From: Schmidtea polychroa
Lineage: Eukaryota
Length of the DNA: 63,726 nt
Direction of reading: 5' to 3'
Assembly: GCA_044892525.1 (NCBI GenBank)
Contig: CM097885.1
Location: 46,810,001-46,873,726, forward strand
Positions within the stretch are counted from its first letter, which is position 1. The number at the start of each line of letters is the position of its first letter. Both the position numbers and the translations under genes were made by a program. Below are positions 4,078-56,700 of the stretch, piece by piece. A model generated the notes under the pieces. That model saw nothing but the letters and a program-made list of their open reading frames with translations. It had not been told where the DNA came from and searched no databases.

Positions 4078-4503
4078 GTGATGCAGCCAATGTTAGTTAA
4101 TTTATCTCATATTTCAAATATACAGTACCAAGAAGAATTAGCAGAAATGCAGAGTGGTGAGTCAGTTAAAACTTTATTTAATATGAAAGGATCGAAGGTA
4201 TGGTTTTTTGAAGAGACCAAATATCCAAGCACAACAGAATGTGCAAGAAAAAAATTATTATTACCGTTTCTTTCTTCATATTTAGCTGAATGCGGATTTA
4301 GTGCCATAACTGATTTGTTACTTAAAAAAAGAAATCGTTTGGATATAACACAACGGGGAGATCTAAGAATGAAGCTAACAAAATTGGAAATGTTTTCGCC
4401 TATTCATCGGCAAAGATCCACAAATGTCAATGTACTTAAAATTACCAGGATCAAATCGGAAAAGCATAAATTGATAACTTTAAGTTTATTACAAATAATT
4501 TGA
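4078..4503 (+). mobile_element. hAT (Buster/Charlie-type) transposase C-terminal remnant
   Basis: LLPFLSSYLAECGFSAITDLLLKKRNRLDITQRGDLRMKLTKLE matches the hAT dimerisation-domain end of Buster/SCAND3-like transposases. No N-terminus or TIRs seen. Confidence 0.75.
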
Positions 4504-5517
4504 GCCTTCAAAAATGGTTTGTTTATTTCTTAACAAAAAATATAGTACAATATGATATCTATAATGTTAATATTTTTTATACCCTATCGATGTCCCAACT
4601 ATTATTATTAGACATCTTTTTAAACATTTTTACTTTTGGTTCATTACATTAACAATTATGCGCTCACTCTTATTTGCTTGGTAAGTATTTAGTCTTTTGA
4701 TGATTTGGCGTAATCATTTCATTTACTCACATCTTTTGTCGTTATGGAAATAACTTGAAAATTAGCGGAATAATGGTGTTCATTACTCCGAATTCTACTT
4801 TAAGTCTCTTTTTCACTAAGCATTATTATATTTTCAAAGCGCGGATCTTAACTTAATTCTGAAACGCTTGCAAATTTTGGATTTGGATTTGCCTTAAACA
4901 TGATAACAAAGTCTTTAAAAGCCTATTACACTGCTTTAATTGTCACAGATGGTGTTGATAAATTCGAAACTGACATTAGTAACAATAGCCATGCCATAAT
5001 TCCTACAATCTGAATGTCAAGCAAATGATGGTTTGTATAAACAGTATAAATTCAAGAGAACTACCACATATCAAAGACCGATGTCAAGAAATTAAAAAAG
5101 TAATTACTTGTTACATTCAAAAAGTTGGTCGTAATAATTCATTGAATATTTTTAATACGTATTCTTAATATTTAACAGTGCGCATTACTTTGTTTTTATC
5201 TATTGAACATCTAAGGAGTAGCTAGTGGTGTCGCTAGAAATTATTTGGGCATTAACTACGCAAAATAAATGATTTAAAATTTGCTATATAACCAGGAAAA
5301 TTATTGAATACTATTCAAAAATTCATTCAGAATTATTCATCAAACATTATTATATTACGGAAATTTTAAAAACAATAAATGATAATATTAATAACAATAA
5401 GCCAAATTTTTATTATTCTATTTTATGGTTTATTTGTATAACCATGATAAAAGTATTGTTATATCAAAACCCATCTTCATTCAACACTAAACCTGCTCAT
5501 TACAACTCCATCCTCTC

Positions 5518-7289: not shown

Positions 7290-7660
7290 CTCTCCTATAT
7301 GTATTTTTCTTTGATCGATATAATGCTCTACTAGCCAACTTCTTCTGTATCACTGATACTAAATAATGTAGCTTTTAGAAAACAAAATTCAACGCTATGC
7401 ATTAGTTCAACACCAACATCTTTTATATCTATTCAAGATAAATATTTAACAATAATTACATTAATTACATTATCCAAATCTTTCAATATTAAAAAAAAAG
7501 ATTTTTTTTGAAATAATTTCGTAAATAGGTTTTACTTAACACATAATTATTTTAAAAAAGAATAAATCTGTAAATAAAAGCATTTTTGTTAAAGCTATTA
7601 TATGTTCAATGTAGTTTTACTGTATAAATTATTTGACCTATACTTTCAAATTTGATTAAA

Positions 7661-19600: not shown

Positions 19601-22600
19601 CCATGCAATGAGTAGCCATGAAAGAGAATATTGTATAACACGAAAAGAGCTTTTGGCTATATATTATTTCTGTCGCCATTTCAACCATTATTTATACCGT
19701 AAACGGTTTGTTTTGCGCACTGATCATAAAGCAATAACTTTTATGTTGACGACAAAGAAGCCTATAACAGCACAGTTCCAAACGTGGATAAATTACTTGA
19801 GCAGTTTAGACATAAAAATGGAGTTCAGGAAAGGTACGGCGCATACAAATGCAGATATGCTGTCTAGAAATACATGTGGCAAATGTGTACAATGTTTGAT
19901 GGACCATGATAACCCCAAATCAGGGCGATTAAAAACTAGATTGTTAACATTGATGACCGAAAATAATGGAAATGAATGGCAGAGATAATGCAGAAATACA
20001 AGATATAAAAGATCAAATAAATGAAAGGAAAAATAATAAATATATATTAAAAAGAAATATTATCTATACCAATCAAAACAAAATATGGATACCAGAAACA
20101 AAAAAACGAGAAATGATTAAGGAAACACATTTATTATTATGCCACGCAGGAGTAGAAAAAGTTATGAAATATAATAGGAACAATTTTGATATGGAAGATT
20201 TGCTAAATGAAGTAAAAGAGACTATTTCAATATGTGAAGCATGTCAGAAAAACAAAGTTTTAACTACAAAGTCAAAAGAAAAAACCCAAGTAATTCAAGC
20301 TTCAGAACCTATGGAGAAAATATACATGGATATTTGCGGTCCATTAAGAGAAACCTTCAGAGGAGAAAAATATATTTGTGCAATAATCGATCATTACAGT
20401 AAATACATATCTCTAACTCCTATTAGAAAGCAAGATGAAAATACAATAAAGGCAGTTTTTTTAAATAATTGGATATTGAAATTTGGAGCCCCTAAGGAAC
20501 TACATGTTGATTGTGTAAAGAATTTTGAAGCAAATAGTATTAAAGAACTAGCAAAGGCAGCAGGAATTGAGTTGATATTTTCGAGTCCGTATCATCATAA
20601 TACTAATGGTGTAATTGAAAGACAATTTCGTACTATAAGAGACTATATTAACGCGTAACTCAGAGAAGGAGTTAAAAAAGCTGGGCAGAATTAATATCTG
20701 ATATAGAATACGTTTTAAATGCGACAGCTCAAAAAACTACTGGAGTGAGTCCAGTAGAAATTATATTTGGGAGAAAGATTAATAGATCGCAATGGCATAG
20801 TAATAATGAAGTGGATAGAAGTGAAATCATGCGGAAATTAGAGGCTAAAAGACAGCAAGCGAAAGAAATTGGCACAACTAGGAACTTAGAAGTGGGGGAC
20901 AAAGTATTGGCGAAACAACAAATTAGGAACAAAGATCACGAGAGATATGAAGGACCATACACAGTAATAAAACGAAATCATGAAAGAAGTTACTTATTAA
21001 CAGACGAAAACGGGAGGAAAATAACGAGGAATATAGAAAAGTTAAAGAATTTTAAAGTAGGGGGATGAAAGGAGTTAGTAAATCTCTATATAAAATTATT
21101 ATGGTTAAATGGTAGAAGTGAGATCAGTTAGTAGAAATAATTATTTCTGTTAAATTTTTATATTTAAATTCTATATTAAATTATATCATATTATATTAAA
21201 TTATATTAAATTAAATCAATTAAATGTATAACCGGTAATTACATTAATATTAATAATTATCACGCCTCGGTGTTTAAATACGCTAGTAAACGGCGCAATT
21301 TTGAAGTTGTTATTAAAATAAATACTTGAAGAAGACTTGAATTTAATTTCGTCTAACAGGGTAAAAAATATTTTATCAACTTTTAATATAACATTTTGAG
21401 ATCAATTTTGAATTTTTATACATGTTTGAATGTAAAATCAATGATTTTTAAGGTTTAAAATTAAAGAGTATTAGTTTATTTGTATAAGTTTACTATATAA
21501 TACAATATCAAAATATACCAACACAATAAAGGACACTTGTGCGTAAATATTGATTAATCTCTTTAACTTATAAAAGAAAATAAATGTTTTTATTTTAAAA
21601 TAAGAAAAAAAACAGACAAAACTTCTAAAAATAATATTTGTAAGATTTTAAAATTATTTGCATTGAAGGTTTTTTATTTGTTTTACTTTATATTTCAATG
21701 TTGGAAAATTCGTAATTGTTTGTGTTGAGAGAATTGTGGATTATTTTACAATATACAGGTAATCCCCAAAGAATTTGTTCCGTGTTCTTTTAAACCGTGT
21801 TGTTCGAGACTACAAAAAACGGAATTTCCGTTTCAAGTGTGAAAATATAAAACTAAAAATTTTATTTTTTGAATTCAATTTAGTAAACACTTCAAAGAAA
21901 TCTTGTATTACATAATTCAAATTAAATTTTTAATTAGTTTAGAAAAAAAATTTTTATCTTAAATTTTTATTATCAAAATAAAACAAAAAATTTGCAAGCA
22001 TATCTTTATTTTGTTAAAATGACATTACCATGCCACCTAGTCCTTATCACTGGAGTCATCTGGTAACGTGATTCTAGTATATTTTCTTGAAAAATGACAT
22101 TTGGAGATTATATTATATCAAATAATAAATATATTTTATTCTTTTTCCATATAATTACTTGAAAATCGTGTAGTTTGAAACCGTGTAATTCGGACCAAAG
22201 TATTCGTGTTCTTCGAGGGTTGATTTTATTATTTAAAATATTTTTACCATCCTAAAATTTGCGGTTAAGTATATCTAAAAATGATATCAATGTTTGTAAA
22301 TATGATAAAGGCAACGGTTTAGTTATTTTGGAACTTGACGTCTACATTAGAAAATTAAATAATGTTTTATTAGCTCTACAGCTTATAAAAGTGGAGACAA
22401 CCGTATTAATCGGAAGTTACCACCAACGAAGGATGAATTGTTTTAGTTAAAACTGTTGAAGGAATTATCAGATAAGAAACATATGGACGTTGACTTAGCT
22501 AAGTCTATTCAATCGAAAGGCTCACAACCAGCAAAACGTCATGGAATACCTAAAGTGTGGTATCATTTGATGTGCGTAGTCTATTTTCGAATGTTCCACT

Positions 22601-29887: not shown

Positions 29888-31552
29888 CAGTGGCGTACGC
29901 AGGGGGGGGGGTTTAACCCCTCATGATTCCAACAACAATATAAAAAACTATAATTAATAAATATATAAACTTAAAACAATTTAAGAAATATTCCGAATGC
30001 CGATATATATACAGGCCCGACAAGAGGGGGGTTTGATGGGGAAAATGCCCGAGGCCCCGGAGAAAAAATCTATCATGATTTAAATCACTTGATTTTTTTA
30101 ATGAAAAAATCATGATTTCAATTTGTAGGAACTATGTTCCTCCTTTTGTAGTGCGTGTGTGTGGGGTACGTCTGGAGAGTGTCCGTTGCCAAGATTGCGA
30201 AAAAGTCTACACGGCACAAACGCATCTTGCAGTAATGGTAAGCACATGTGGCAATCTTTTGTTTGTCAAGAGTCAAGTGCTTGCTATCACTAGCTTTTGA
30301 CATTTTGAGCCTGTTTCATTATTTACAAACTATTATTATTTAACTAAAAGAAAAATTACAAACATTAATATTTTAGTAAGTGTAGTTGTTTGATCAATGT
30401 GAAAATCTCCAGGAAGAAGCGGATAAAGTAATCGTGTTTGTGAACTAAGCCGAAAGTGAATAAGAAATTAACCTAAGCTTTGGGCTACAAAGCATTTCTT
30501 TACCGGTGCTGGAGTGCTGAAGTCTAATTTTCGATTATTAGTAATTAGCAGTCAATGGGAGACCGCCATCGACTCCGATATTCGCGACGTGGATGAATTA
30601 GAAATGACACCAAGTGACGAATTCAGAACAAATGTTTTCAATGTTTTCTTAGATTGTATTATTGGAAATATTTGCAAGAAGATTTAATGCGGCTAAAGAA
30701 ATTGATTCGTTATTTAATGTATTATGGTTATTTCATAACCTTAATGATGAAGAAATACAAAAGAAGTCCGAAAAATTACAAAAGGTATATGAAAATAATT
30801 ATGACCATAATCTTGGTGAAGAAATACTCCATTTAAAATCAATTTATGATGCCAATATACAAAACAAATCTCTCTCGCCCATTGAGTTACTAAACATCAT
30901 TAAAAAAATGAAACTGGATGTATTGTTTCCCAACATAATAATAGCACTAAGATTATTTTGTACGATCCCTGTAACCGTTGCTGAAGCAGAACGATCCTTT
31001 AGTGTTTTTAAAAGGATAAAAGATGTTTTGAGATCCACAATGTCACAACACCGATTGAATGATTTAGGAATGTTGTCGATTGAATCTGAAATGGCTAAGA
31101 AAATTGATTTTCAAGACGTAATTAATTTGTTTGCTAGGCGCAAAGTTCGGAAAGCAACATTCTAAAAAATAATTTGTTTTTTGTACTTTTTTTGTAACTT
31201 TGGTTGTAAACGTTTTCATTTTTGTAAGAGAATTTTTGATGAATACATTGTTCCAATAACAATTAGGACATTTTTCGGTTTCCCGCTTCATTTATAAATA
31301 GCCCAAAGTCCGAGGGGAAAAATTTTTTTTCACGCTATTGGCAGGGGCCCTACAAGAAGTATATCCCCGGGCCACAANNNNNNNNNNNNNNNNNNNNNNN
31401 NNNNNNNNNNNNNNNNNNNNNNNNNNNNNNNNNNNNNNNNNNNNNNNNNNNNNNNNNNNNNNNNNNNNNNNNNNNNNNNNNNNNNNNNNNNNNNNNNNNN
31501 NNNNNNNNNNNNNNNNNNNNNCCCCGATGGATTCATCCTGCGTACGCGCCTG
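29888..31552. mobile_element. hAT element containing a nested second hAT
   Basis: Termini CAGTGGCGTACGCAGG and CCTGCGTACGCGCCTG, with exact 8-bp TSD ATTGTGTT (29880-29887, 31553-31560). The inner element starts CAGGCCCGAC at about 30012 and its right end runs into the N gap. Confidence 0.8.
30662..31165 (+). pseudogene. hAT (Tip100/ZMYM1-like) transposase C-terminal fragment
   Basis: LFPNIIIALRLFCTIPVTVAEAERSFSVFKRIKDVLRSTMSQHRLNDLGMLSIE is the hATC dimerisation domain. The catalytic core is deleted. Confidence 0.85.
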
Positions 31553-37549: not shown

Positions 37550-40500
37550 TTTAAATATTAAATTTAAACTAACTTAATTTTACCCTATTAGACGCAACAA
37601 CCCCAACGCCAATGTACCTTGGCACGGCCCTGTATAAATCTTTTTTTATAAATAAATAGTTAAACCTACATGGTAACGATTTAATTATAAGAAGGTGCCA
37701 CTCAAAAATTCATTTTACGATATATTTTGACAGTTTTCCTGTCATCATCAGGTAGGATATAATAACTATATAGATTATAGATTCTTGAACAAATTTATGC
37801 ATTATAAGAACTTCTTTCAATTTTCACCTCTGATTTCTTTTCAATTGACATTGCATTTATTTAAACATTGACTATGAATCAGTAAAGATATAAAAAACAT
37901 CAATATCTTTACTGATTCATAGNNNNNNNNNNNNNNNNNNNNNNNNNNNNNNNNNNNNNNNNNNNNNNNNNNNNNNNNNNNNNNNNNNNNNNNNNNNNNN
38001 NNNNNNNNNNNNNNNNNNNNNNNNNNNNNNNNNNNNNNNNNNNNNNNNNNNNNNNNNNNNNNNNNNNNNNNNNNNNNNNNNNNNNNNNNNNNNNNNNNNN
38101 NNNNNNNNNNNNAATTTTAATTTGTTTAACTTTTAAAATTTTACTTTATCTAAGAAATTGTTTTCTAAATAAATTTCAAATTTTTCATTTATAATAAATC
38201 CTCTTTGTATAAAAATAATCTTCAGTAATGAAATTCTAAAATCAGTTAACCTTCTCCGTGTAAAAAATAATGCTGATATTTATAGTGAGCCGTTCTATTC
38301 CCACAAAAACGGTTACAAAATGTGCCTTCAGCTTCATCCCGATGGATTCAAAGCTGGAAAAGGGACACATCTTTCTGTTTTCTTTTTCATAATGCGCGGT
38401 GAAAACGATGCACTTTTGCAATGGCCTATGAAACTGGAATTGACATCTTGCTTTATTGTCGAATATATTCAACAAATATACGGAGAGGGTTAAATATCAA
38501 ATATGCAAAATAAACACCCACTATAAATTTACTTATTGAAATAAAGTGTACTTATTATTACACATTTTTTTCATTTTATTGTATCAATTTAATTTAAGGG
38601 ATTTTTCCGTTTTTCATTATTCCTTATTTTAAATTCAATTTCCTCTAACACTGTATTAAATTTTATGATTTATATTTAATAATCTTTATAATTGTCGGTA
38701 CAAATATTTACACTGAAATATACATGCACACGCTATCATTTATCATTAATAATTATCTTGATGTTTATTGCTTGCATAAATTAAGCCGCAGCGTAGATTT
38801 TTATAAAAATTTTCTTTTTATCACGCGATTTTAAATTAAATCTTTAAATCTATATTAAATTAAATCTAATAAATCTATATTTAAATTAAATCTATTTGAA
38901 ATATGCTAGAAAATGGTCATTGATTAAATAAATTTTATTATTGACAAATTCTTTATTTTAATTAAGCAGATTAACAGTGAATTTCGTATTTTCTTCCTTG
39001 TATTATGTCGGTAGTTTTAGTTAAGCAATTAAAATTAAACAAGAGTTTTGTTTACAATTTAAACACGAGTTAGACGGACAAATTGAAAAATACTTCATTA
39101 CAAAAATAATTACTGGAAAATATCACGAAAAAGATTTTTTCAAATGACTGTCGAAAGACAAGTTTTATTTAGACGCGTCTTAACAAAATACGAGAGGATT
39201 GCTTCCTATTGAAATTATTTTGAATCATAAAAATAAAGTTACAATTGATTCTAGATAAAACCTTAGAGTTAAATTAGAATTAAATTAACAGTTGAACACA
39301 GTGTAAAAAGAACTATTATTAGAATAATATATATGGATGAAAATAAATACAAAACACTTTGAAATGTGATAAATTTTTCATTTGTAAGGAGAAAGATGAT
39401 ACTTTGAGATTGAAATACTATTAGGCAAAGACAATTAAATAGCTAAAAAGTTGGAAGAGTTTTCAAGGTGGAAGAGTTATCTATTTATTTATTTTATATA
39501 TTATATTTAAAACTTTAATATTTAATCGAATTAATTACTGAATTTGAAAAAAGGTAAGAAAGGAAAAAAATTTTATAATGAAATAATTTATATTTTACTG
39601 TGACACATTGCTACCCCGACAAGATTCTATTGCTCCCTGAGGGAACTTTCGACCCTTTTATCTAATCTGATGAATTCAAACAATCAACAAATTGTTGTCA
39701 TTGACTATTTGTCAACAAATTCACTGATAACAATACGTAAACGATTCACTTAAAATTTTAAAATTATTTCAAGCAAATTTGTAAATTTTTCAATAAATTT
39801 TTTAAGTAAACATTTATCATATTAAATTAATTAGATTAAACATTTCTAATTTTGCGTTTTGAAAGTTATATTTAAAGAAACAAAAAATAAAAATAGAATG
39901 GACGCATTAAAATATTATTGAGACTATCACCGTTTTACATGTTATTAATTATGTTTCATTTAACTTTATAAATTGATTTTTCTTTGATTAATTGCTGTTA
40001 TATAGATAATAAAATTCCAAGAAAAATGCGCGAGTTCTTATGTGTAATAAAAGTTGCTAATTTAAATATTTGTTTTAATAAAGTGAAACATTAAAATATT
40101 TTTAAATTTTTTTTTTGAGAAAATCAAAATATTTAAGTTACAAATTTATGAATAAGTAAAAATGACTTATAAATAGATAATAATTATTATAAGAAGTAGT
40201 GTGTTTATATCCCTAACGACCACAAGCCTCCCACTGTTTTCATGTTTTATACCTATTTTTCCCCCATAAACGTAAAAAAAACACTTAAAACCCCTAAAAA
40301 CCTATATCTTTTAATTTCTTTATTCTGAAGACATTTTGGTTTCAAAATAAAGACTTAAAAAAAACAACAAAAATATTAAAAAAACAACAAAAATATTAAT
40401 AAAACGGGGAAAAAAATACTGATAAAACTATGAAAAACGTTTGTCGGCTTGCGGTCGTTAGGGATATAAACACACTACTTGAGGATGTCAACTAGCAAGT

Positions 40501-43500
40501 TGCTATTTGACTAATTTATAATTTTATAAATCTTAATCTTGAAGAATAAAAAATTTTATGAAAATAGTAAAACTGCTCTGAGAGGACAGTGGTATTTTTT
40601 TTTTTTTTTTTTTCACTGTCCTCTCAACAGTTTTTTTTGATCCGGATCATTTTTTTTTTTTATTTCAACCTCTTTCGTTTATCAAATCTCTTCCAATATA
40701 CAAGCTGGCCAGACTTATATATCAGAATCAATTCGATAATAGCAGCACACCTTATTATTCGCTTCTCGCTCACGAAGTCGATTTCATCGGCGTTTTAAGT
40801 GTGCTGCTCGAAAGTACAAATGAATTCGAAAGCGAATCCGAAAGAGGTCCGAAAACAACCAAGAAATAAATGTGCACATTATAGAATCGATCCGGGGGTG
40901 TTCGAAAGACTGGTGGCGATAATTACCGGTTCGCCACCATCACCCGTTTCAATATTTTTTTTTTCATATTTATGTTTAAAAATTAATTAATTAATAAATA
41001 AATAAATAAAATAAACAAGATTTATTTCCTAAGATACCCACACCATTTTTCAATATTATTTTCAAATTTTTAATATTATTTTATGTTGAAAAAAAAACTA
41101 ACCTCAGACGTGATTTGAACCGCTAGCATTTGAACCACTGTGCCAGTCTATTCCCACTGCGCTATCGGAGTTCGGATTTTTGTCATTTTTTAAATTTTTA
41201 ATTAATAAAAAAATAAAATAAAATAAATAAAATAAAAATAAATAAAATAAAATATAAATCTAAGATACCCACACCATTTTCAATATTATTTTCAAATTTT
41301 TAATATTATTTTATGTTAAAAAAAAACTAACCGTAGTTAGGATTTGAACCGCTATCCATTTGAACCACTGTGCCAGTCTAGCCCACTGCGCTATCGGAGT
41401 TCGGATTTTTATCATTTTTTAAAATTTTATTATAAAAATGAATAATATAAATCTTAAAATTCAAGAAAAAAATAAATTAAATCTTGATTATAATAAAGAA
41501 TTTACTCATGAAATCAAGAAAAATGATATTTTAAAAATCTCGCCAACTTCAGGATCTATTGCAAACTTAAATCGTAGGGGTGATATAGTTTTTCAATCTC
41601 TTCAAACATCAAACCCAATAGATATTTGTAATGCCAAATTATATTATAAAATTGAATTAGAAATTGAAGCAAACAAAGATATAACCATAGAAAACAATTT
41701 CTTTCCAAATTTATTCTCCAACATGAGATTAAAACTAGGATCATCAGAAATTGAAACTGTTTTACATCCAGGAGTATATTCTACAATGTTAAATTTTATT
41801 TTGACTGGTTGTGATTATAAAAATGAATATGGTGAATTAACAGGTTGGATTCCTGATGTTAATAAAGGAGATTTAGATAAAGATGGTTTAGATATAAATT
41901 ATGCTTACTATAAAAGAGCTGAACTTTATAAGTTGAAAAAATTTGAAGGTTATTTTGAATTAAAACACTTGTTCGGATTCCTTCAAAACTATAACCGGGT
42001 GCTCCATAATGTTTTTATAGAACCCATCTGTAATAGACTAGAAGGTGATAAAAGATTGTTCTATGGAGCTGCAGATACAAAAGCTAAATTAAAATTATCA
42101 ACACTTGAATTGCATATACCTGAATGGAGATTAAATCCACATTCTGAAATCAAACTCCTTGAAAGATTAAATTCCAACAAATCTATAAATGTAAATTATT
42201 TAAATCGAATCTGTAGTGAATTTAGTATGACAGAGGGTTCAACATATTCTATAAAGGTAGCAAATTTAGCATACCGACCAAGATATATCTTGATTGGATT
42301 CAAAGAAACAGATTCATCTTTCCAAAAAAATAACAATCTATTTATTCAAAAGATTGGAGATGATAATATAAAAACAATCCAAATTCAATTAAATAGTTCT
42401 TATTATCCAATAAATAGAATGGAATTTAATATTGAAAATAATGAAAACATATTCCCATATCTAAATTATATTGAAACATGTTATGATTTCAAAGTTGAAC
42501 CGCAATTAAGTTTAGAAGATTTCAAAAATTTATATTCTATATTTTGTATAAATGTATCAGACCAAGATGATCGCCTAGCTATAAATAATGTTGATGTTAC
42601 ACTTCATATAACAAAGGATTCTAATTTTAAAGCTAAAGTATATACATTAATATTAGAAGAAAAGAAAATAGAAATGAAGTTGTATGCTGGAAAGATTTCA
42701 ATTATTGAAAATGTTAGGGGAGATTCTTCATAAGTAGATTCCCCCATAAAAAAACTTTTAAAATGAGTAAATATTGGACATGTGAAAGTTGTAATTGTCA
42801 AGTTACAAGACATCACAAAGCAAGTCATCTCAAAACTAAAAAACATACGAGAGTTGATATTACAGGAGGTGATCTACAATCTTCAAAAACAACATCTAGA
42901 ATCTTGAAACTTTTTACTAATGAAAAATATCCAGGTGAAAGACATTTATTCCATCACAACTATACTGGACCTGGAACAAGATTAGATATTAGATTAGATG
43001 AAAATAATAATCCTAAACAAGGAGAAGAACCAATAAATAGAATTGATCAAGCAGCTTTAAAACATAACATTTCTTACAACTCTGAAGATCTTAGAGATAA
43101 ACATGTTGCTGATGTGAATTTAATACATGAGTTAAATAATATACAAAATCCATCAAGCAAGGAAAAGATTCAAAGAGCTCTAGTTAAATTAGCAATGAAA
43201 GGTAAGATTTTCATAGGCTTAGGACACAGTCCGATCACCATGGGTGCAAGACTTCCTAGGAAAGCAAAAGATGTTGCTAATAAAAAGATTATCGAACAAG
43301 CAGAGATTGAAAGATCCCTCGAGAGTACAGCCAAGACTAGTTTACAAACCCCAACAGAATCAGAAATAAAATATGCTAATGAATTACACCATGAATTTAG
43401 AAAAAATAAAAAATATTTAAAAGTTCAAGTACATGAAAAAGATCAAACATGGTCTGCTGATTTAGTCTTTATGCCCAAATCATCAGACCCTGAAAAATAT

Positions 43501-46500
43501 AAAATAATTTTAACAGTAATAGATTTATATACAAGATTTGCTTTTGCAAGGTGTTTAGAAAATAAAACAGGATATTCTATTACAGAAGCATTTGAAAATA
43601 TATTTGAAGAATATCAAAGAATTCCAAAATATTTATGGTGTGATAAAGGAACAGAATTTTATAACAAAGTTTTTACAAAGTTTTTAAATGAAAATGATAT
43701 TAAATTATATTCAACAGAAAACGAAGGAAAAGCAGTTGTGGTTGAAAGATTAAATAGAACATTAAAAAATAAAATGTGGAAATATTTTACTGCTATTGGA
43801 AAACAAAAATGGAACAATGAATTGTTACAAAAGATTGTAAATGAATATAATAATGATGTACATAGTTCTATAAAATCAACACCTTTAAATGCTTCCATGA
43901 AGCCTGAAACCATTAAAGTGGTGAATATTGAAAATGATGTTATTGTTGATACAACCCCTATAAAACCAAAGTTTAAAATTGGTGACCGAGTAAGAATATT
44001 TAAATATAAAAATAAATTTGAAAAAGGATTCACAGCAAAATGGACAAATGAAATTTTTATTATAAATAAAATACATTATACAACTCCAATAACATATAGC
44101 ATCATTGATTTAAATAATGAAAAAATATTAGGTAGATTTTATAATAATGAACTACAGAAAACAGATTTTTAAGTCGACAAGCCCTAAAACAAACTTTTCC
44201 ATATTTCAGCTTCTTCTCTATCCAAATAAATATAATTATATTTTTCTTTCCAATGATTATCAACAAACATATCAAACATATTCTTATCAGGTTCAACATT
44301 TGAAAATAAGTCATTATAAATCATATTCTTATCTCGACGATCTAATTTAAAAAATATAAAACAATTGGAATTATTTCTTATAGAGTTTTTATCTAAAGCA
44401 TAATATGTTTGAGATATATAAATAACATTACAATTATTATGTCTACCTCGTGTAAAGTAACTCTTTTGAATCTCTTGATTTTTCATGTTAACAACATCAT
44501 CAAATATAACTAGATTCTTTTTATCTTTAGGAAGTAAATCACAATGCAAAACATCTTCAGGTTTATTAGAGAATAAAACTCTAATCCCATAACCCTCCCT
44601 CTGCCCCTCATCTTCACAGATGTAATCATTTTTATTACTAATATCTGATTCTAAAATCTTTTCCTTGTACCAATCAACCATATCACAAGGATGAAAAACC
44701 TCTTCGGGATATGTATGTTGATTTTTAAAAATATCAATTATTGCTTTTTTAGTTAATTTATTTTCAAATCCACATTTCAAAAGTTGTAATTCCGGTTGGT
44801 TAATGGTTGTAGAATAAAAGATTAAATTATTATAATCCAAAAAACCATCTTCTAATAACATTCTCATAAGAAGAACATTCTTTCCACATCCAGAAGATCC
44901 AATAATTAAGCATCTAAAATTATCAGGAAATACTTTATTATTAAATTTAGATTTATGTCTATTTAAAATTGGTTTCCAAGTATCCATTTTTATTTATTAT
45001 AAAATGACAACACAAAACCCTACAGAGGAATCTTTGCAAGAATTAATAAATTCAAATAAAAATAAATCAGTAGTAATCTCTGGTAAAAACTATTTTATTG
45101 GAATACATGTAAAAGAACAAGTTAAAGAAAAACTAAAGGAAGGAGGGATTCTTCCTCTGGCGGCTTTAATACCTGCAATCATTGCCGGACTATCAGGTGC
45201 TGCTGGAATAGCTGGAGGAATTGCAACTACAGTTCAAAAAGCTAAAGAATCTCAAAAGACAGACCTAGAAAAAGAAAAACTACAAACTGAAATCGAGAAA
45301 ATGAAGGGAGGGAAAGGTCTTTATCTTGATCCTTATAAAGGTCGTGGTTTAAATGATTTTTTAAAAAATCAAATTTCTACATCTGAATCTTTATCTTCAA
45401 AAGATAAAGATGATTTAAAAAAAATATGTAAATCTTTAAAAAATGGATGTCTTTGTAAAATTAAAAATGGTAAAGGTTTATACTTGAAACCCTTTCCAAC
45501 GGATCCTTTACCAAAATGATACCATTTTTAATACCATTAAAATGGTATATGAAGAAAGATTAGCACTTTTAAAAAAATTACAATCAGATCAAGATAAATA
45601 TAATAAAAAAGATACAACTCAACACGCTGAATCTATAATATTAAATGAGGTAATCCAACAACAACAAGGACCAACAATTAAAGCCATAAAAGAGTTAGAA
45701 GTTTTAAAATTTAAAGAGTTGGAAGATAAACAAGATTTAAAAGAATTACCATGGTTGGAAGATTTAAATATAAAACCTCTTATACTTGATCCTAAAATTA
45801 ATGTGAGTTTAAGTAAAACAATTAAACCTACATTTAATATTAATGTTGAAGGATATCAAATAATAACAATTAATAAACATGACTTTCTGTTATATTTAAA
45901 TTCAGAAAATAAATCACGTATTCATTCACAAAATGTTTATAATACTAAACACCTAGATTTTGAATTTACAGATGATTTTTATGGATTAGTTTGTGGATAT
46001 CCCTCAGAGAATGTTGATCTTCTAGAAATTAAAAAATATTTAAATTTAATAGAATTAGTACATGGTAGTGCTAAAGCAAAACATATTCAAGATTTAAAGA
46101 AATATTTAAATAAAAATGAAAGGGGTTATATTGTCACAGAAGGAGAGGGCCAGGGAAAGGGTAAGGAGATAAACCCAATCAATCTTTTTATTGAATTAAG
46201 AAAACTATTAGCAGCTAAAAAAGCAGGACATAATAATTTAGATTCTGATATTTTAAAGATTTCTAAAGAATTATTAAAACAAGGAATAATTTCAAAAGAT
46301 AAATTTAATAAGTATACGAAGTTATAAATACGAAGTTATAAAATATAAAATGACTCCTTCAATATTAGATTTTTTAAAAACATTTGGAATAAATACAAAA
46401 ACAAATTTTGATTTAAAAGATTATGCAGATTATTTAAATTTAAAAATAAAAATATTAATGAATGATGAATTGTCGAGTCTGAAAGAAGACACTCCAAAGA

Positions 46501-49500
46501 ATATCATTATAAATTATCAAAATTCAAATGAAAAAGGATCTCATTGGGTTTGTATATATAATAAATCTATATACTTTGATTCTTTTGGGATTAAACCCAC
46601 TAAAGAAGTTGAAGACTATCTCTCGGACTACACTTTTAATTCTTTACAAGTTCAACCTAATAATACTAAAATATGTGGTATTTTAAGCTTATATGTTTTG
46701 TATAGATTGAATAAATCCAAAGGAGAAGGTTTCACTTCCTTAATCCAAGAAATTTATAATGATTTAAAATCTATACTATGAAAATGGAGCTTCGCAACCT
46801 TCCGGAAGATAATTTAAAAAAAATGGTAAACATAATGTCAGATAAATATTCAAGAACTTTATCTATAAATTCAAAAGAATCAGACTTTACTATAAACTTT
46901 CAAGATTCAATTAAATTAGATCAAAATTTAAATTATGAATTAGGACTATTATGGTTTTGTGCTTATAATACTATTTTTAATATAACTAAAGATAATAACA
47001 TATTTTATTATATAAGCCCAAAATCTACAGATAAGATTATAATAACAATCGAACCCGGAGCTTATGAAATAAAAGATTTAAATAATATACTTTCTAAAAA
47101 AACAAATGGAGTCATTAAAATTAAAATGGATTTACCAACTTCAAAATGTATAATGACTTTAGAGAATATAGGAATTCATTTTCAAAATAATAGTTTCTTT
47201 AGAACAATTTTAGGATTTACACGAAACCATTATATCACACCTGTAGTTGAGAATATAACATCAGAAAATATTATAAAAATAATAAATACAAACACAATAA
47301 ATATTCATTGCGATTGTATAACTGGTTCTTATAATAATGGTAAACAAACAAATGTTTTATATTCCTTTCCCTCAAACACAGTTCCTATGGGATATAAAAT
47401 AGTTGAAAGAATGAATCCTCCAAATTATTTACCTTTATGTAGAAAATATATAATGGATATTAATTTTAAAATTCTTAATCAAGAAGGAGAATTGATTGAT
47501 TTTAATGGAGAAGAGATTTCAATGTATTTACATTTGAAACAGGTTTGAAGATTCATTTTAAATTATTAATAAATGAGTTCTTATATTCCATGTAATAGAG
47601 GTGGTGGAACAATAAAAACAGGGTTTAATACAGAAGAAATATTAACTTTAACAGAAAATAAATATATTAATGAAAGAGGTGATTCAATGAAGGGTGATTT
47701 AATTTTAAATGGACACAAGATAAAAGAATTATCTTTTCCAACTGATGAAGCTGATGCAGTTAATAAGAAATATGTTGATGGTGTTAAAAAATATACTGAT
47801 TTAACAACAACAAGAATTGAAAGTTCATTAACAACAAAAATTGATAATATCGAGCAACGATTTAATGATAAATTTGACAAGTTACAAAGTCTGTTAACTG
47901 AACAAGTTGTAAAGTTAAATACTAGCATATTAAATTCTAAAGATAAACAAATTATGAATACTAAATTTAATACAATATATAATATAATAAATGAGATGAT
48001 TACATCATTTAATAAAAGACTTTCAAATTTAGAGTCTCATACAACACACATTAACACCACACATAGTATTAGAAAAAGAGCTGCTGAATTAGAACAGAAT
48101 AAAACATTATTACCCCATACATATAAACATTTTATAGAACCAAGTTTAATAACAACAAACAGTAAAGAATGGGGTGTTTTTATGGTTGTAAAGATTATTG
48201 ATCCTTATTTCTTTTTATTTGATGATGATAATGAAAAAATGAAATGGTTTGTGAAATGTGATTATAATAGTAAGCTTGAAAAGGGTGATGTTATAATGAC
48301 TAGTTATGATTTACCACACGGAGATTGGTATGTTAATACTCATTCACATGGACTACATAAAGTTAAAAGTAAGAATATTATTTTTAAAAGCACACTTGTA
48401 CAATATATAGATTTAATATTTTATGAAAAAAAGGTTGATGTTGATGAAGTTCGTAAAGCATTGATGGAATTGTATAAAGATATTCTCTCAACAAGAGTTT
48501 CTTTTGATATCCGAGTATTGGTACCAGATGGTGCTCAGAAGAATAAAGTCTTATTTTTTTAATTATTAAAATGGACAAAGTCCAAAAGATGGAAGAAGTA
48601 AGAGAAGAAAAAATTTACCCAGAGGTCCCTCCAGAATTGAGATCATCAGGATATTATTCCGAAGGTCACAAAAGTTCCAAGGCCTCGGCTCCCACAGAAC
48701 TTGAAATTATGAGAGTAAAAGAATTTAAATCAGAAACCTTACATTTACAAGATTTATTAAAGCATTATAAAAAGGTTAAAAATAGATGGAATAAAGGGAA
48801 TACAGTTTTAAAAATTATAGGTTATTCTTTAGGATTTGCATCTGCAATATTAACAGTTATTTTACCCATAACTTTACCAGTTTTAACAATAGCACCTGTA
48901 ATACTTGGAAGTATTTCTTTAGCTGATGGTTTCTTGACTGAAATAGTTTCATTATCTTATACTTCTAAAAAGAAAAGTTTATATCGTGAAGTTTGTTTAT
49001 CAATAGAATTAGGAATCTCTAAATTATTTTTATTTCAATTAAAAGCTTTGGAAGATGGAATCTTAACTGATGATGAAATAATGAAATCAAATCAAATAAT
49101 ACAAGATATTAAAAATAATATTAATAGATTAAAAAGTGCTAATGTTATAACTAATGAATATTCTAAAATAATTAAACGAGAGAAGTGGCTAAAGAATCAT
49201 ACATAAAAAAATTTATTGCCCTTCAAAAGGTTGATGTTGTCACTCTTAAATTAATTGTTGACATTTTTAAAAGAAAAAAATCATTTGATAGAATCTGATG
49301 TTAACTTTTCGAAATTAGTTTTTAGAACCTCCTTATGATCTTTAAATTCTTTATCACTTAGACCTTTTATATATTCAGGATCAGTATTAAAATATTTAAG
49401 TTCTAAACATATAGGATTAAAAACTTGAGAATATAAAGGTTTCTCAATTCTCTCAGGATAAATGATTTCAACATTATAAATATCAAGATCAGTAATCTTT

Positions 49501-52500
49501 GTATCATATAACTTATTCAAACTAGCAAGATTTTTTATTATCGGTATTAAATTATTTCCTATAGGAAGAGTTGTCTTTAAATCACTTAGTATGAATCTTT
49601 TATCATCATAATTTGATAATGATACTTTTTGGGATTCTATCAAGTAAATATCATGCTTTTCACTTTTAAGTTGATGTATTTCATCAATTTTATCTTTATG
49701 ATTTGGATTCAATGTATCTATATAATCTTGATGAGAAAGATTCTTTGCTACACATCTCTGAATTCCTTTACATCTGTTATCCTTTACAGGTTTTTCTTCC
49801 TGTCCGTCAGGTCCTTTAGGGAATATAGGATATCTATGTGTAATGCTTTCTTCTGTTTCTGGGGTTTTAAATATAAATGTATGTTCTTCAAATTTAGGAT
49901 TTGTAAATGTTTCATATGAATATTGTTTAGCACGAATAAATATTCCATTTTCTATAGGAGTAAAAGGTTTTTCATCTTTAAACGAAAATAATTCTCCAGA
50001 TGAATTTATTAAATTTGAAAGTATAGGATTTTCAGAGATATCACTTTGTAAATCGTGAGTTCTTATTGTTAAAAACATTGAATCTGTATCCATTGCATGC
50101 ATTGCTATATTCGATCCATATATAGGTTGTAAGATGTTATAATATGTTTCATACATTTGTAATTTTGAAAGTTCTAAAATTGCAAAGCCAATAAATATTG
50201 GTTTATTATATGTTTTCTCATAATTCTTTAGTTCTACTGCAGTAAGATTTTCAGAAAATACTTGTGCGTTTTTAAATGTAGGCTTTCCTAGCATACGATT
50301 ATAACGGGCTATATCTTTCGGGGTATTTGTTAGGAGTTCAATATGAGTATATTTATCAACATTCTCCATTGTCTTCCCAAAGACTGAATTGTTTAAAAGT
50401 TTATAATTATTGTCTTTTAAAAGGTTACCTTCTCTTTTTGCAATGTTTCGACAACGAATGTTCTCCTCGATGAAAGTCTTCATGAATGCTGCTTGTTTAA
50501 ATCTTATGACACTATGAACTTTTTTTAATATCATTCCTTGTGAAAGATAAAACTGGAGGAGTCTATAGTGACAAAGATAATAAGTTCGATCTGTTTGATC
50601 ACAAAGAAGTTTCATTGTTGGAGGTTTATCTTGTGAGATTTGCCATTCAGAAAGTTCGTTGATATCAATCTTTCTTCTTATAGGAGCTAAAGGGAAATGT
50701 CTTGTTCCTGATTTTATATCATCTGGGTAGTCGAGGTCACATTCTACAAAGTATCCTATTGGAGAATCTTTAGGAGTTGAACGTATTTCTTTCATAAGGT
50801 CTTTTAAGGGGCATTCTTCTTCTGAGGGGCATTCTGGAGGATATATTTCATGAAAGTCACTCATTGGTAAATATTGAGTCATAATTCCTGAATATAAAGC
50901 TGTTGCATCTATATAAAGTATAAATAGAGGATTTTTCATTCCTTCTAATACTTCTTTTAGTTCCTCATTGTTAAGTTTTATATATGGATCAGGGTGTTTA
51001 GAGATTCTTCGGCTAGTAGTTATTGCATTTCTAGCTTTTATTTCTCTATTCCCCATTACTGAAGATACTCCTCCTCTAATGTTTGTTTTAATTTGATTAA
51101 ACATATCTTGGTCGGTTAAAAGATCTATAATTTTATCAGATTCTGGAAGATCTGAAGTTCAAATGGTATATAACATAGTATCCCAAGCTAAAGAAGGAGC
51201 TGTTATATAATTATAAGGTTTAAGAACAAAAGACTTTGTAAATTCTTCAAAGCAATCTGCTAGAATATAAACATCTAGGGATAAGTACATACTTGTATAT
51301 TCTCCTAAAGTTTTACAGTTGAAAAGATCCCACATTTTATTTGCTCGAGAATATTCTTGATTTGTAATATGAGATTTTTGAAGTTGGGAATAGAAATCTT
51401 CTTTCTCTGGTAATTTTGTTTCATTATATTTTTCAAATGAATCAACATAGTCATAGGGATATATTCCTTTTGCTAAGCATGTAGGATATTCTTCTGGGGG
51501 GATATTATTTTTTTCCAAGAATTCTCGAGTGATTTTAAAATTTTCTGCTTTCATTGGTTTAGCTATTCCATCTAGAGACATTTGGAGAAAGTTTAACGAG
51601 TCTATAAATTTTAATTTTCCATATTCAACTGATTTATATTTTTCCTTTGTAAGTCCTATAACTTTGAAAGAGTTTTTAGCATTTTCTGCTAAATGTTTAA
51701 TAAATAGATGTATGTCATAACCAAAAAGATTATGAAATATAACTGGTACAAATTTAGGAGTATGACAATTAAGATTACAATTTCTATGGGCTGCTCCTCG
51801 ATAATTATTTTCCTTTTTTAAATGATCGTGATCTATAACTTTATCATCAGGAAGAATGTCTTGTTTACACATCCAACAGTTGGAAGTATTTTCATATTCT
51901 TGTTGTTGTTGATTAGAAATTTTTTGAGGATACTTTGTTTTTAATATTTTAAATATTTCATGTTCTAGATCATTTATACTTTTAGTAAAATGATTTAAAA
52001 CATCTTCTGAAGTTCCTTGAAATGCATATTCTCTAGATTCTATGAGTTCAGGATAATTACTTTTAAATAATAATTTATAAGCAGATGGTAATTGTTTAGT
52101 TTTTTAACACTATTAGGTTTATTTCTTTTTCTTAGAAAGGCTTTCATCCTCTCTGGTTTCATCTTCTGTTTAGAGGCTTTCCATTCATCCATGAGTTTAT
52201 ATTTTTCTATTATTTTTAAATATTGCATAATTATATCTTGTTTACGATTTATAGATTCAAAGTCTCCATAGACAACTCCTAATGTTTGTAATAAATTTGA
52301 AAAGTTTTTAAAATACATCCTGGGATCTGTAGGCATTCTAATTAAAGCTGGATCATCTTTTTCACAAAATCTTGCATGTTTAATCATAGAGTTTTTAGTT
52401 GTTGAATAATGAAGACATCTTTTACATGTTCCTCCTCCACTAGTTGGATTCTCTGGTGATGTAAAAGCTTGAAAGTCTTTTATTAAAACATAATGTTGAT

Positions 52501-53690
52501 TATTTCCTTCTTCCAAGATTAAAAGATATATCTCCCTCGTGCTATCACTATCAGAAATATAAATTGGAATAATATCTTTCCTTCCATGTCCCCATCCTTT
52601 AACATGTTCATAAATATTAAGTTTAAGATTATTTAGTTTTTCAAATTCTGGAATGTCTTCTAGTTTCATTGGGTGTGTGAATCCCTTGGGAAATATTAAT
52701 TCATTTTCATATTGTTTGTATTTTGAAACTCTTTGAGGGTTTTCAGCTTGAGGATGTAAATATGCAAGTATTGACCACATGAAACATTTGTTATCCTTAT
52801 TCTGTACATTTATAACAACCCTAGATCTAAAGGGTGTTTGAATATAAGATTTAGGATTAGGTGGTAATCCTCTCCAATAATCAATCACTAAAGTTTGGAA
52901 AGAGTTGAATACTAAGTTTGAATCTCCTAATTCATTTTCAACCTCTTCTTGTTTTGCTTCTACTGCTTGAATTATTTCTTTGATGCTTTTATTAAATCCT
53001 CTAGTTGAAAATAAATATTTAAAAGGTATTCCAATTTCAACATCTAAAGGAGTTGTCTTTTCTTCTGGTCCTCTCCAATATTTTGCTTTGATTGTAATTT
53101 TATATTTTATAACATTATACCTTGTTGGTTTATAATTTTTTAAAGCTTCAGTGAAAGAATTTTTAATATTTTTTTTATTTCTCTTTATATATTCTCCAGG
53201 AGTAGCAGGTCCACTGATTTCTGATTGAAATCCATCTATGTGATTAAATTTATCCCAGTTATATTTTTCTTTTTCAACATGATCAGGTTCTCCTTCTGAA
53301 TGACATTCTTCAACGTCAGAATTTTGTTTTTTATTTTTACATTCTTTTAAATGTCTTAAATAATAGAAATTTAGTTTTGTTGAAAAGTTACAATGAGGAC
53401 ATGTAAATATTTCTCTATTTTTCCCGATACAATTTTCAAAATGTTTATTATATCCAGAATGTAGAAATCTTCCTTTACATTTAGTACAAACTTTTGAATT
53501 TGTGTCATTAAGATTATTTTCTTTTAGTAAGTGAGCTTTCGATTTATAGTGAGAAATTAATCCTGTTTTATTTTTAAAAACTTTATTGCAAATATTACAA
53601 TTCATTTTTAGAAAAAATTTTTTTACTGGATACGTTGTTTTTAAATTTTTATATATTTATTTTTATTTTTATTTTTTTTTATTTTTATTT

Positions 53691-53722
<32 letters not shown>

Positions 53723-56700
53723 TTTTTTATATTTATATTCTAGCAGCTTGCCAAGCTATCGACCTGCCAAGCTGTCGACTTACCAAGCTGTCGACTTGCC
53801 AAGACCGCAGCGATTGCATCATCGACTTGACAAACTATCGACTTGATAAACTGGCGACTTGATAAACTGGCGACTTGATAAACTGGCGACTTGATAAACT
53901 GGCGACCTGCAAGTAGTGTGTATCTATCCCTAACGACCGCAAGCCGACAAACGTTTTTCATAGTTTTATCAGTATTTTTTTCCCTGTTTTATTAACATTT
54001 TGTGTTGTTTTTTTAATATTTTTGTTGTTTTTTAAGTTTTTATTTTGAAAGCAAAATGTCTTCGGAATAAAGAAATTAAAAGATATAGGTTTTTAAGGTT
54101 TTAAGTGTTTTTTTTTTACGTTTATGAGGGAAAAATAGGTATAAAACGGGAAAAAAATAGGTATAAAACATGAAAACAGTTGGGAGGCTTGTGGTCGTTA
54201 GGGATAGATACACACTACTATAAGAACTTTTTTTCCAATTTCACCACTGTTTTTCCATTGAATTTATTAAAAAAGCTTGAAGACTATAAATCAGTAATAT
54301 ATCGATGTTTTTGATATATTTACGGATTTATAGTCTTCAAGCTTTTTTTAATAAAATAATAATTAATTTAAACCAATTTTCTATGAATTTATAAAATCTG
54401 ATATTTTATTATTATTACTTATTACTTTTGTTTATCTTTATATTTTTACATTTTTCAGAATGTTTAATCATAACAAATATACCCAATGTTGAATGAAAAA
54501 TTTTGATTAAATTTCAAATAAATAGAAAATTATCTATTAAATCGTAGATAAAGAAACCAAAATTTTGTGAAAGAAATTTGAAAATAATTTTTAATAGTTT
54601 TGTTGAAAAACAGGAACTTAACCAAATTCTTTCTTGATAAACCGTAATTTTGTATTGAACTTCATTTAATCCTTTCGGTAAGTTGCAAACATGCTATTTA
54701 TGACCAAACTATAAATCAAAATTCATTAATTGTTATCGAAGTACGTTCAACTGCAACTACATATTATATATCAATTAACCGCGATGAGCTTTTTTTGAGG
54801 ACATTTACAAAGGGTTAAAATAAAAATACAAAAAATAACAATGTAATTCAAAAATTGATGGAAATTTTGTATTTATCTCGCCCTTATTTAGCCATCTCCT
54901 GATTTTTGCTACGGCTATGTTAATTTCCGTCAAGTCAAAGATAAGTCGATCCGACGAGGATATTTTCAAAAAGTAAATTTCACTACATTTTTTAATTTTA
55001 AATGTCTAATTTTTTTAGTCCGTAGTTGTTTTAAGCCCATTGCCTTTTATTAATTTATTTTATAAAGTATCGGAGTTAGTAGCGCTAGCATATTTTGACG
55101 ACGGAGAAATCGGCCTGGAAGTTGGTATGAAATATGATGAATAATTATTGAAATGAATCTGAACTATAGTTTGTCACAATATTGATAAATGGGGACCGCC
55201 AATGGCCGGACAGTTGATCAATCTTCCTTTGAGAGGAGTTGTTCTACAAACGCAAATTCCCATTAAAACTGACTATGTAAAATGTGAACCAAATGGAAAG
55301 GTGCGAATTTCGAAATCTATTATTCAGGACATAGAAGACAATGTTAATTCTCAACTTTATTTATCGATTTGTATTTAGTTGTAAAAATTTTGCAGGAGGA
55401 TCAGAAATTATTAATAGATAATTCATCAATTTGTATAATTCCATCTGTACATAATCAAGACTGTTTTACCGCTTTTGGAGCTGTAGTTAGCCAATTGCAA
55501 TTACTCTGGGAGCTCGTCTTAACCAATCAAGTAAATATTTCTGCATTTATTCCGTTACAGTAAATAAATTACTTATTAACTGTCATACTATTGAATTGAT
55601 TATTATACAGTCAATAATATTCTATTAATATTATTGACAGCTGGCATTTGAATATTTCACTCAATATTTCTATTTTTGAAGTAGAATTTATAATTTCTAT
55701 ATTGCTTGAAATTCAAATGTAATTTCTAACTTGTTTTTTGTCTGAATTCTAATGGAATTTTACCTTTGAAATAATATGATTTATCTTTATCAAATTGGAT
55801 TTAATCTATTACCATATTTGATCCCATAACAAATGGAGAAATATTACATTAATTGAAAAGGTCTGTAATGTCATCTATCAAAATGTAACTGCAATAAACA
55901 TGATAGTTGATTGATTCATCTGATTGTTTTTGACGTAACATAAGTGTATCATAGAAATTATTTCAATGATAATTGTCCAATTATATAATACACAATGCAA
56001 TTTATACCATTTTAATTATTGAATTTTTTTCATGAATTCATATATAAGTTTAGTGCAGAATTCTATAACTTGAAAGTTATTTGATTATATTACATTTTGA
56101 TAATGTTGCTTTTTATTATTGTTAACACTTGGGATGGGAAAAAATGGACATTATAGTAAAATGAAAGAAAATTCATAAACCAGTTCGAAATGATATGTTT
56201 TATTCAAAGCACGCTTGTATTAGTGAACTTCAAGTTGATGCTCTTCCATCATCTTCACTGGTCTTTCAGCGACAATATTGGATCTGGGAATATCCAGAAC
56301 AGGCGGCTTCTTAACCCATTGGGTTTCGAATCATTTTATCGCATTATGACATTCAAATGTTAAAATAGCAGATGTTTTATTAAATAATTAGGTAAAAACT
56401 CACTCAGTGGAAATAATACTCCAAAAATTTCTTAACTGAGCATCATATGAAAGCAGAAAGAAATAGGCTATTAGAGTAAATTTTGCGTGGGAGTTCCATC
56501 TGTTATTTAGCAAAGGAACCTTCACCATTTCTAATCGGAAACTTACCTGACTTCTGATGGAATTTATACGCTTCAAACACTCCAAAGGGAAATCGAACAA
56601 TGGAACGCGACAAGGTCGTTTTTTTATTAACATCATCAGATCCTGTGCATATTACAATATACAATATTTTCTTTCCTTTTTTGAAGCAGTTTTCAATCTA

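Follow-up and report, generated by a model that had tools for sequence, protein, structure and literature searches.

Self-complementary terminal modules with matching inner and outer tips, predicted to fold as hairpins, bound a Polinton/adintovirus-like element in Schmidtea polychroa

Polinton/Maverick elements are described as having terminal inverted repeats (TIRs) of 100–1000 bp, a short terminal tandem repeat, and a 6-bp target site duplication, and the short terminal tandem repeats have been cited as support for protein-primed replication of these elements (PMC4196379). The way in which Polinton or adintovirus ends are replicated has never been shown, and the textbook picture is borrowed from adenovirus, in which identical ends pair together. 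The genomes of adenovirus and PRD1 are linear and double-stranded, are replicated by protein priming, and end in a short repeat used for jump-back, and in the accepted though unproven panhandle model the pairing of the two ends on a displaced strand rebuilds the origin and restores homology between the ends (PMC11886824). The published Polinton TIR is a plain repeat that pairs end to end in this way, as a racket or panhandle. Ends that fold back locally are known from other systems. At the telomeres of linear Streptomyces replicons, which are protein-primed (Tap/Tpg), the protein-capped 3′ overhang folds back and brings the terminal palindrome into pairing with an internal palindrome (“rabbit ears”), and experiments have shown that synthesis on the foldback restores tips that have been truncated (PMC5449611). 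In parvoviruses of the adeno-associated virus (AAV) type, the end is repeated in inverted form after two small palindromes, which gives a stem with two ears and a paired 3′ end (PMC11575299). For the repeats of bidnaviruses, thought to have a Polinton origin, it is stated that they do not fold into hairpins of the parvovirus kind (PMC4061559). In the literature searched, no account was found of Polinton or adintovirus repeats that are self-complementary or able to form a hairpin. Here we describe an element in a 63,726-nt stretch of the Schmidtea polychroa genome (assembly GCA_044892525.1, contig CM097885.1, positions 46,810,001 to 46,873,726 of the forward strand; hereafter the window, to which coordinates refer unless another contig is named) in which each TIR is, unlike the published repeats, a palindrome bounded by two copies of the element tip, the two TIRs being 93% alike.

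The element, a whole integrated copy, occupies positions 40195..54219 (14,025 bp; a strand does not apply to the element as a whole) and was delimited by its target site duplication, terminal arms, and gene content. The hexamer ATAAGA is found directly outside both termini (40189..40194 on the left and 54220..54225 on the right) as a perfect duplication, so both flanks belong to one insertion. The element contains no runs of N, and the open reading frames (ORFs) between its terminal modules are densely packed and open. With TIRs of 285 and 308 bp, the 6-bp duplication ATAAGA, and the terminal tandem repeat AGT-AGT, it has the termini described for Polintons, and together with the genes discussed below these features identify it, at the level of sequence, as a Polinton/adintovirus-like genome.

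The terminal arms were located by searching the 63.7-kb window with the pattern AGTAGTGTGTNTNTATCCCTAACGACC, allowing up to three mismatches. This search resulted in exactly four matches, all of them exact, and 100 shuffled sequences gave none, in agreement with the original prediction, which had placed four arms at these positions. The left outer arm tip (40195..40221, + strand) starts with AGTAGT, and the left inner arm tip (40453..40479, − strand) is its exact inverted copy, with AGTAGT facing the core. At the other end, the right inner arm tip (53912..53938, + strand) is repeated exactly in inverted form by the right outer arm tip (54193..54219, − strand), with which the element ends in ...ACTACT. 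Each tip is 27 nt long, and nt 11–16 read TTATAT in both left arms and ATCTAT in both right arms, as had been noticed earlier, the differences lying at nt 11 and 13. The tips bound two imperfect palindromes, the left terminal module (40195..40479, 285 nt) and the right terminal module (53912..54219, 308 nt), which are at the same time the left and right TIRs. When the left end was aligned with the reverse complement of the right end, homology spanned the whole 285/308-nt unit and stopped 2 nt (TG) past the inner arm tips, in line with the earlier observation that it ends within a few bases of the inner arm.

Over this unit, 19 substitutions and 4 indel events separate the left module from the reverse complement of the right (93.3% identity); identical left and right repeats, which characterize adenovirus-type ends, were thus not found. 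Within one end, the tips are identical at 27/27 positions. Arm homology extends to ~80 nt, with identity past nt 27 of 35/51 on the left (69%) and 40/52 on the right (77%). Each end had been expected to fold as a loop of about 290 nt on a stem of 27–34 bp. The stem was recovered, with 27 perfect base pairs, or 34 with one G-T pair on the strand carrying the 3′ end, but the loop had been overestimated, as the spacers between the 27-nt arms measure 231 nt (left) and 254 nt (right). The only other perfect inverted pairs of at least 20 nt with a spacing of up to 800 nt in the whole window are a (TA)n tract and two short hairpins. The two modules lie in the same relative orientation, which in one copy is expected half the time and is uninformative on flip/flop.

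The four arms were then aligned over ~80 columns, and each column was classified by its grouping pattern. In nt 1–27, 25 columns are invariant and two group the arms by end, with none separating outer from inner arms and none showing the cross pattern. In nt 28–82 the picture is reversed: no column groups the arms by end, ten separate outer from inner arms (left outer = right outer, left inner = right inner), and the cross pattern is again absent. The probability of this 2:0 versus 0:10 split of the 12 informative sites is 1/66. Only the terminal 27 nt carry a by-end signal, opposite to that of the remaining arm. The outer-versus-inner grouping past nt 27 indicates that the module is a true TIR, the outer and inner halves of which had differentiated before the ends diverged. 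Had the differences between left and right accrued after integration, 13 kb of genes would be full of breaks; since the genes are open apart from the polymerase gene discussed below, the 93.3% identity implies that the ends probably already differed in the replicating genome, or that this copy is a mosaic. The left/right divergence thus probably argues against efficient end-to-end homogenisation. Copying between outer and inner tips is required in every scenario that we constructed, because positions that are free to vary between ends and lineages are identical within a module, and these comparisons support the view that outer and inner tips are kept alike by copying and not by chance.

The same design was found in two distant relatives. 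The first, contig L027 (ENA), encodes a capsid protein 44% identical to that of the window element and carries the same fusion of an integrase with a phospholipase A2 (PLA2)-like domain. This contig ends exactly in ...ACTACT, and an inverted copy of its last 27 nt starts 327 nt inward, with arms that are identical at 27/27 positions, at 95% over 41 nt, and at 86% over 79 nt. The second, L033, was recovered via a homologue of the N-terminal piece of the polymerase and has a 236-nt module with arms identical at 23/24 positions; this module is flanked by host-like transposon genes on one side and by the polymerase gene on the other. The AGTAGT tip, a 3-nt tandem repeat, opens the module in each of the three lineages, and the module adjoins the 5′ end of the polymerase gene in each, although the outer arms of different lineages are identical at 9–16 and differ at 11–18 of the 27 positions. 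Pairs were read by index from both ends of each of the four modules, 27 positions in each. Watson-Crick pairs account for 106 of the resulting 108, with at least two pair types at 20 of the 27 positions, and sliding the partner by 1–3 nt reduced the number to 27–34 of 108. Perfect pairing is broken at nt 28 in all four modules, by a transition difference, and this common break suggests, as far as sequence can, a fixed limit of the copied tract. A design conserved without conservation of its sequence looks like a working part of copying or maintaining the ends. The proposal that each end is a foldback unit with arms copied from each other is strengthened by both the switch of site pattern at nt 27/28 and the recurrence of the module in L027 and L033.

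All modules are predicted to fold far better than shuffled sequences, with z-scores from −9.7 to −16. For the strand carrying the 3′ end, the predicted energies are −54.7 kcal/mol for the left module of the window (z −9.7; other strand −50.6), −66.2 kcal/mol for the right module (z −12.5; other strand −60.4), −84.4 kcal/mol for L027 (z −14.1; other strand −80.1), and −72.1 kcal/mol for L033 (z −16.0; other strand −63.7). The predicted fold of the L027 and L033 modules is an arm stem bearing two internal hairpins, a Y shape that is weaker in the window, where the modules are predicted as one long imperfect hairpin with a central hairpin. In the left module this central hairpin, placed from the predicted folds and the sequence, lies approximately at 40316..40354 and is centred on the module midpoint. 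The hairpin tips of L027 (15984–16167) and L033 (7650–7813) share the motif GAGCGRAGCGAG, oriented in the same way with respect to the terminus; the window modules lack it. In the predicted foldback, the 3′ end is paired to the inner arm and faces into the genome, which agrees with the geometry first proposed. A strand preference of the fold was rejected: the 3′-end strand is 4–8 kcal/mol more stable in 4/4 modules, but shuffled sequences shift alike.

The explanation that we favour, and to which we give about an even chance, starts from what the sequences show, namely the anatomy, a design conserved in relatives, tips that evolve in concert, and predicted folds. It holds that each TIR is a selected, hairpin-capable, self-complementary module, foldback of which rebuilds a local duplex origin and re-templates the tip. 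The layout of arm, structured spacer, and inverted arm would then be part of the biology of the ends and not an accident of insertion. If an end became single-stranded, for example as the displaced strand in protein-primed replication, the module would snap back and the 3′-terminal 27 nt would pair with the inner arm on the same strand. This pairing would rebuild a double-stranded terminal origin locally, independently of the other end 14 kb away, and the rebuilt origin would include the AGT-AGT tip, which the protein-primed polymerase could use for slide-back initiation. Slide-back and jump-back mechanisms are established for phi29 and adenovirus. The foldback would also provide a template for recopying or correcting the tip, and local templating of this kind would keep the two 27-nt tips of a module identical while the remaining arms and the two ends drift apart. 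Folding in vivo, a role in replication rather than in integration, and the direction of copying are what we infer from these patterns; pairing of the two arms on one strand would be the simplest physical route for the copying.

A local panhandle is preferred because the element encodes a protein-primed polymerase and has a terminal 3-nt repeat, and because Streptomyces telomeres offer a precedent. The Streptomyces telomeres differ in belonging to bacterial replicons with an internal origin and in having a 13-nt paired tip within a dense cluster of seven palindromes, and their proteins are unrelated to those of the window element, in which no sign of an internal origin or of 3′ overhangs is seen. 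The likeness is one of analogy only, as the pairing geometry here is predicted, the copying is read from site patterns, and there is no homology of protein or sequence. Relative to adenovirus and PRD1, the difference is in the pairing partner, which is the opposite genome end in those viruses and would be ~240 nt away on the same end here, where the ends are not kept identical.

Several points weigh against this explanation. The by-end signal consists of two sites 2 nt apart in one copy, for which a single event is possible. The by-end pattern would also be produced by an assembly chimera of two copies, or by a mosaic of two strains with four identical tips each; copying between outer and inner tips would still be required, but not copying confined to one end. 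The main caveat is that, with two sites in a single copy, a two-strain mosaic looks the same as copying confined to one end. The claim that variants are shared within an end and not between ends was therefore upheld as a pattern and weakened as a basis for inference. An inverted repeat shows “compensatory” change by definition, and the covariation cannot separate base pairing from two copied protein-binding sites. The module folds are predictions, with similar z-scores on both strands and no composition-corrected strand preference. Inner inverted termini, which the original prediction had suggested looking for in other Polintons, were found in L027 and L033, but no module was found near the polymerase gene in L028, L032, and L034, contigs in which the termini were not identified. 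No further copy of the element family with ends was found in the public collections searched (IMG/VR, JGI metagenomes, and GTDB genomes).

In a rival explanation, the tips are two inverted recognition sites for one end-binding protein, either the integrase or the polymerase/terminal protein. Retrovirus-type integrases and protein-primed polymerases recognise terminal duplex sequence. All four tips would normally be alike, and the copy in the window would join the ends of two strains, through recombination or assembly, so that the co-variation would reflect differences between strains. Strains a few percent apart do exist, as L002 and L003 are 96–97% identical to the capsid/integrase region of the window element, and the 6.7% divergence between the left and right modules is about what non-coding DNA of such strains should show; only the two adjacent sites, moreover, carry the signal by end. 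Nevertheless, a new tip variant would still have to pass between outer and inner positions, so this explanation moves the place of copying and not the need for it. Selection for binding sites alone leaves the 27/27 identity at positions free to differ without an account, and the matching 6-bp duplication ties both flanks to one insertion. We regard twin recognition sites combined with mosaicism as unlikely, though deserving of serious attention. An assembly artefact was rejected as the source of the architecture itself, which was found in three independent assemblies, where the arms are imperfect and the spacer is structured; an assembly chimera may still underlie the left/right mosaic.

Close inverted repeats can exchange short tracts, and one such event would suffice for two adjacent sites. 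Gene conversion after integration, in which host repair copied a short tract between the close arms with no role in the life cycle, was considered on these grounds. It gives no account, however, of the module design and perfect 27-nt tips of the relatives (27/27 in L027, 23/24 in L033) or of the boundary at nt 28. The open genes mean that the element has spent little time decaying in the chromosome, and arms of 27–47 bp are poor substrates for homologous exchange. We find this explanation very improbable.

The predicted folds bring the modules close to the AAV-type parvovirus repeat, in which the unit is also present in inverted orientation at both genome ends. The order of arm, hairpin, hairpin, and arm followed by unique sequence, clearest in L027 and L033, is the layout A-B-B′-C-C′-A′-D of the AAV repeat (PMC11575299). 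In a parvovirus-like rolling hairpin, the folded 3′ end would prime synthesis, and a site-specific nick near the inner arm would later resolve the product and recopy the tip. The paired 3′ end in the predicted fold points into the genome as this would need, the conserved pairing break at nt 28 could mark a nick site, and the integrase bears a parvovirus-type phospholipase domain; an evolutionary link of Polintons with the parvovirus-derived bidnaviruses has also been published (PMC4061559). Self-priming of the parvovirus type, as originally suggested, nevertheless fits poorly with the element. Its polymerase is protein-primed and its terminal 3-nt repeat is typical of protein priming, whereas parvoviruses use a site-specific Rep/NS1 nickase and a terminal resolution site. 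No HUH/Rep-type nickase, resolvase, or other nuclease was detected in any ORF of the element by searches of Pfam, PHROGs, and PDB sequences, at the sensitivity of sequence profiles; the only Endonuclease VII domains are those that precomputed annotation assigns to some distant homologues. Full hairpin transfer should make the whole arms complementary, but only the first 27 nt of the stem are perfect and the remainder is at 69–77%. The AAV-type repeat measures 145 nt, compared with 236–327 nt for the modules described here, and packaging of double-stranded DNA is suggested by the double jelly-roll capsid and the A32 ATPase. A rolling hairpin is accordingly an improbable explanation of the modules.

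The modules also resemble the units of composite transposons (flanked by insertion sequences, of the Tn5/Tn10 type) and of foldback elements or miniature inverted-repeat transposable elements, in which a core is flanked by two inverted short units with functional-looking tips on both sides. The element could accordingly be a composite, with two miniature foldback transposons of 285–308 bp, sharing their ends with the Polinton, flanking the core in inverted orientation, their tips having been homogenised while they propagated alone. Complete AG...CT tips are present at both ends of each module, homology between left and right covers exactly this unit, and a panhandle inside a mini-element would homogenise its two tips; the outer tips and the 6-bp duplication would then reflect movement of the whole unit at once. 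Against this, the hexamers at the inner junctions, TGAGGA on the left and CCTGCA on the right, do not repeat the outer ATAAGA, and so the modules were not inserted separately here. The units are non-coding, unlike those of composite transposons, and the recombinase is a retrovirus-type integrase encoded by the core. A solo module was not found in the window, IMG/VR, the JGI metagenomes, or the GTDB genomes, and the interior of the modules shows no trace of a different terminal repeat. Finally, two relatives whose module sequences are unrelated have this design beside the polymerase gene, so a composite would have to be ancient and maintained, and would then be a functional structure of the ends all the same. 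The composite of two mini-elements that the original prediction had offered as its alternative reading is unlikely as an accident, and we give it very little weight.

If the favoured explanation holds, the self-complementary ends, with concerted 27-nt tips and a design kept in three lineages, would make local foldback a working structure of these genomes. The modules define a searchable signature, namely an AGTAGT tip, an exact inverted copy of it 200–300 nt inward, and a pairing break at nt 28, by which the proposed link between the ends of Polintons and those of parvoviruses and bidnaviruses becomes testable from sequence data alone. New here are the genealogical switch at nt 27/28, the L027 and L033 modules, and the common break at nt 28. 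A bolder and distinctly doubtful extension is that there is a clade of animal Polinton-like viruses with hairpin-capable telomeres, in which the module at each end would serve on its own as origin and telomere and would join protein priming to a foldback like that of parvoviruses. Were this true, the module might extrude as a cruciform when integrated, providing a defined structure at the junction of host and element for release of a copy. It would also link Polintons, bidnaviruses, and parvoviruses mechanistically, and would bear on how integrated Polintons start replication without a free end.

The gene content of the element is that of Polinton/Maverick elements and animal adintovirus-like genomes, with a protein-primed polymerase, an rve integrase, a double jelly-roll capsid protein, an A32-type ATPase, and a PLA2-like domain (PMC4196379; PMC8502044). 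The double jelly-roll major capsid protein gene (41438..42733, + strand) matched Pfam PF21738 (E 1.4e-25), and its product has 38 homologues, metagenomic without exception. Upstream of this gene and overlapping its start are two tandem copies of a non-coding 229-nt unit (40993..41451), of which the relative L002, a 97% identical metagenomic contig, has a single copy. The next gene (42763..44172, + strand) encodes an integrase with an rve core (PF00665, E 3.3e-12) and an N-terminal PLA2-like domain of the parvovirus VP1 type (PF08398, E 1.7e-07), a fusion that is also present in L003 (1414–2805) and L027 (2121–3512). PLA2-like genes are known in adintoviruses, where they are described as genes of the virion module and not as integrase fusions. 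An A32-like genome packaging ATPase (PF04665, E 2.5e-08) is encoded at 44184..44987 on the − strand. None of the six unassigned ORFs matched any Pfam or PHROGs sequence profile, including those of an adenovirus-like cysteine protease or a minor capsid protein.

The protein-primed family B polymerase gene (49281..53605, − strand) was identified from a match of its C-terminal piece to PF03175 (E 1.2e-07); zinc fingers are present on the N-terminal piece, and both pieces align to the two pieces adjoining the end module of L027. The gene consists of three open frames with two interruptions, one an in-frame stop and the other a frame change, and is the only gene of the element that is read in several frames. 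Its homologues in L027, L028, L033, and L034 are similarly fragmented next to intact neighbouring genes, and on this comparison the two interruptions may be introns rather than signs of decay. Between the start of the polymerase gene and the right inner arm tip, the space is occupied by two iteron-like arrays of a 16-nt tandem repeat (53747–53803 and 53823–53906; 3.6 and 5.2 copies), which abut the tip. A search of the left end for a counterpart of the 16-nt array gave no match at up to three mismatches, and nothing equivalent is present in L027 or L033.

L002 and L003 are the closest relatives in the capsid/integrase region, and their contigs stop short of the ends. No terminus could be identified in L001, L005, L006, L016, or L028–L032. 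The arm pattern of the window had no match in IMG/VR, the JGI metagenomes, or the GTDB genomes, and the arm patterns of L027 and L033 had none in IMG/VR. A capsid-guided locus search returned nothing from IMG/VR and 23 short loci from the JGI metagenomes, none of which has a homologous module, and an exact-protein look-up of a central gene gave no record.

Three of the relatives have further unusual features. In L027, positions 1–1150 have a G+C content of 59–65%, compared with 27% elsewhere in the contig, which has no left terminal module; either the insertion is truncated or the contig is an assembly chimera. L001 contains a 470-nt near-perfect palindrome (4245–4714; 94.5%), with a 133-nt partial copy 2.5 kb away at 7233–7363. 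Because its ends bear no relation to AGTAGT, it probably represents a foldback mini-element of another kind. In L028, a gene-bearing inverted duplication of 1968 nt (545–2506 and 7179–9076; 93%) flanks the polymerase region and could be either a very long TIR or an inverted segmental duplication.

The host flanks of the element in the window have a G+C content of 27% and are rich in transposons, and their content marks the host as an animal with an AT-rich genome. Genes in the flanks include an intronless amiloride-sensitive sodium channel gene (749–2320), a gypsy-type RNase H/integrase fragment (19449–20658), and a hAT dimerisation domain (30662–31165). In the right flank, 50 nt from the element, lies a perfect 24-nt inverted pair with a 32-nt spacer (54269–54292 and 54325–54348), which may belong to a further small foldback element at the site of insertion.

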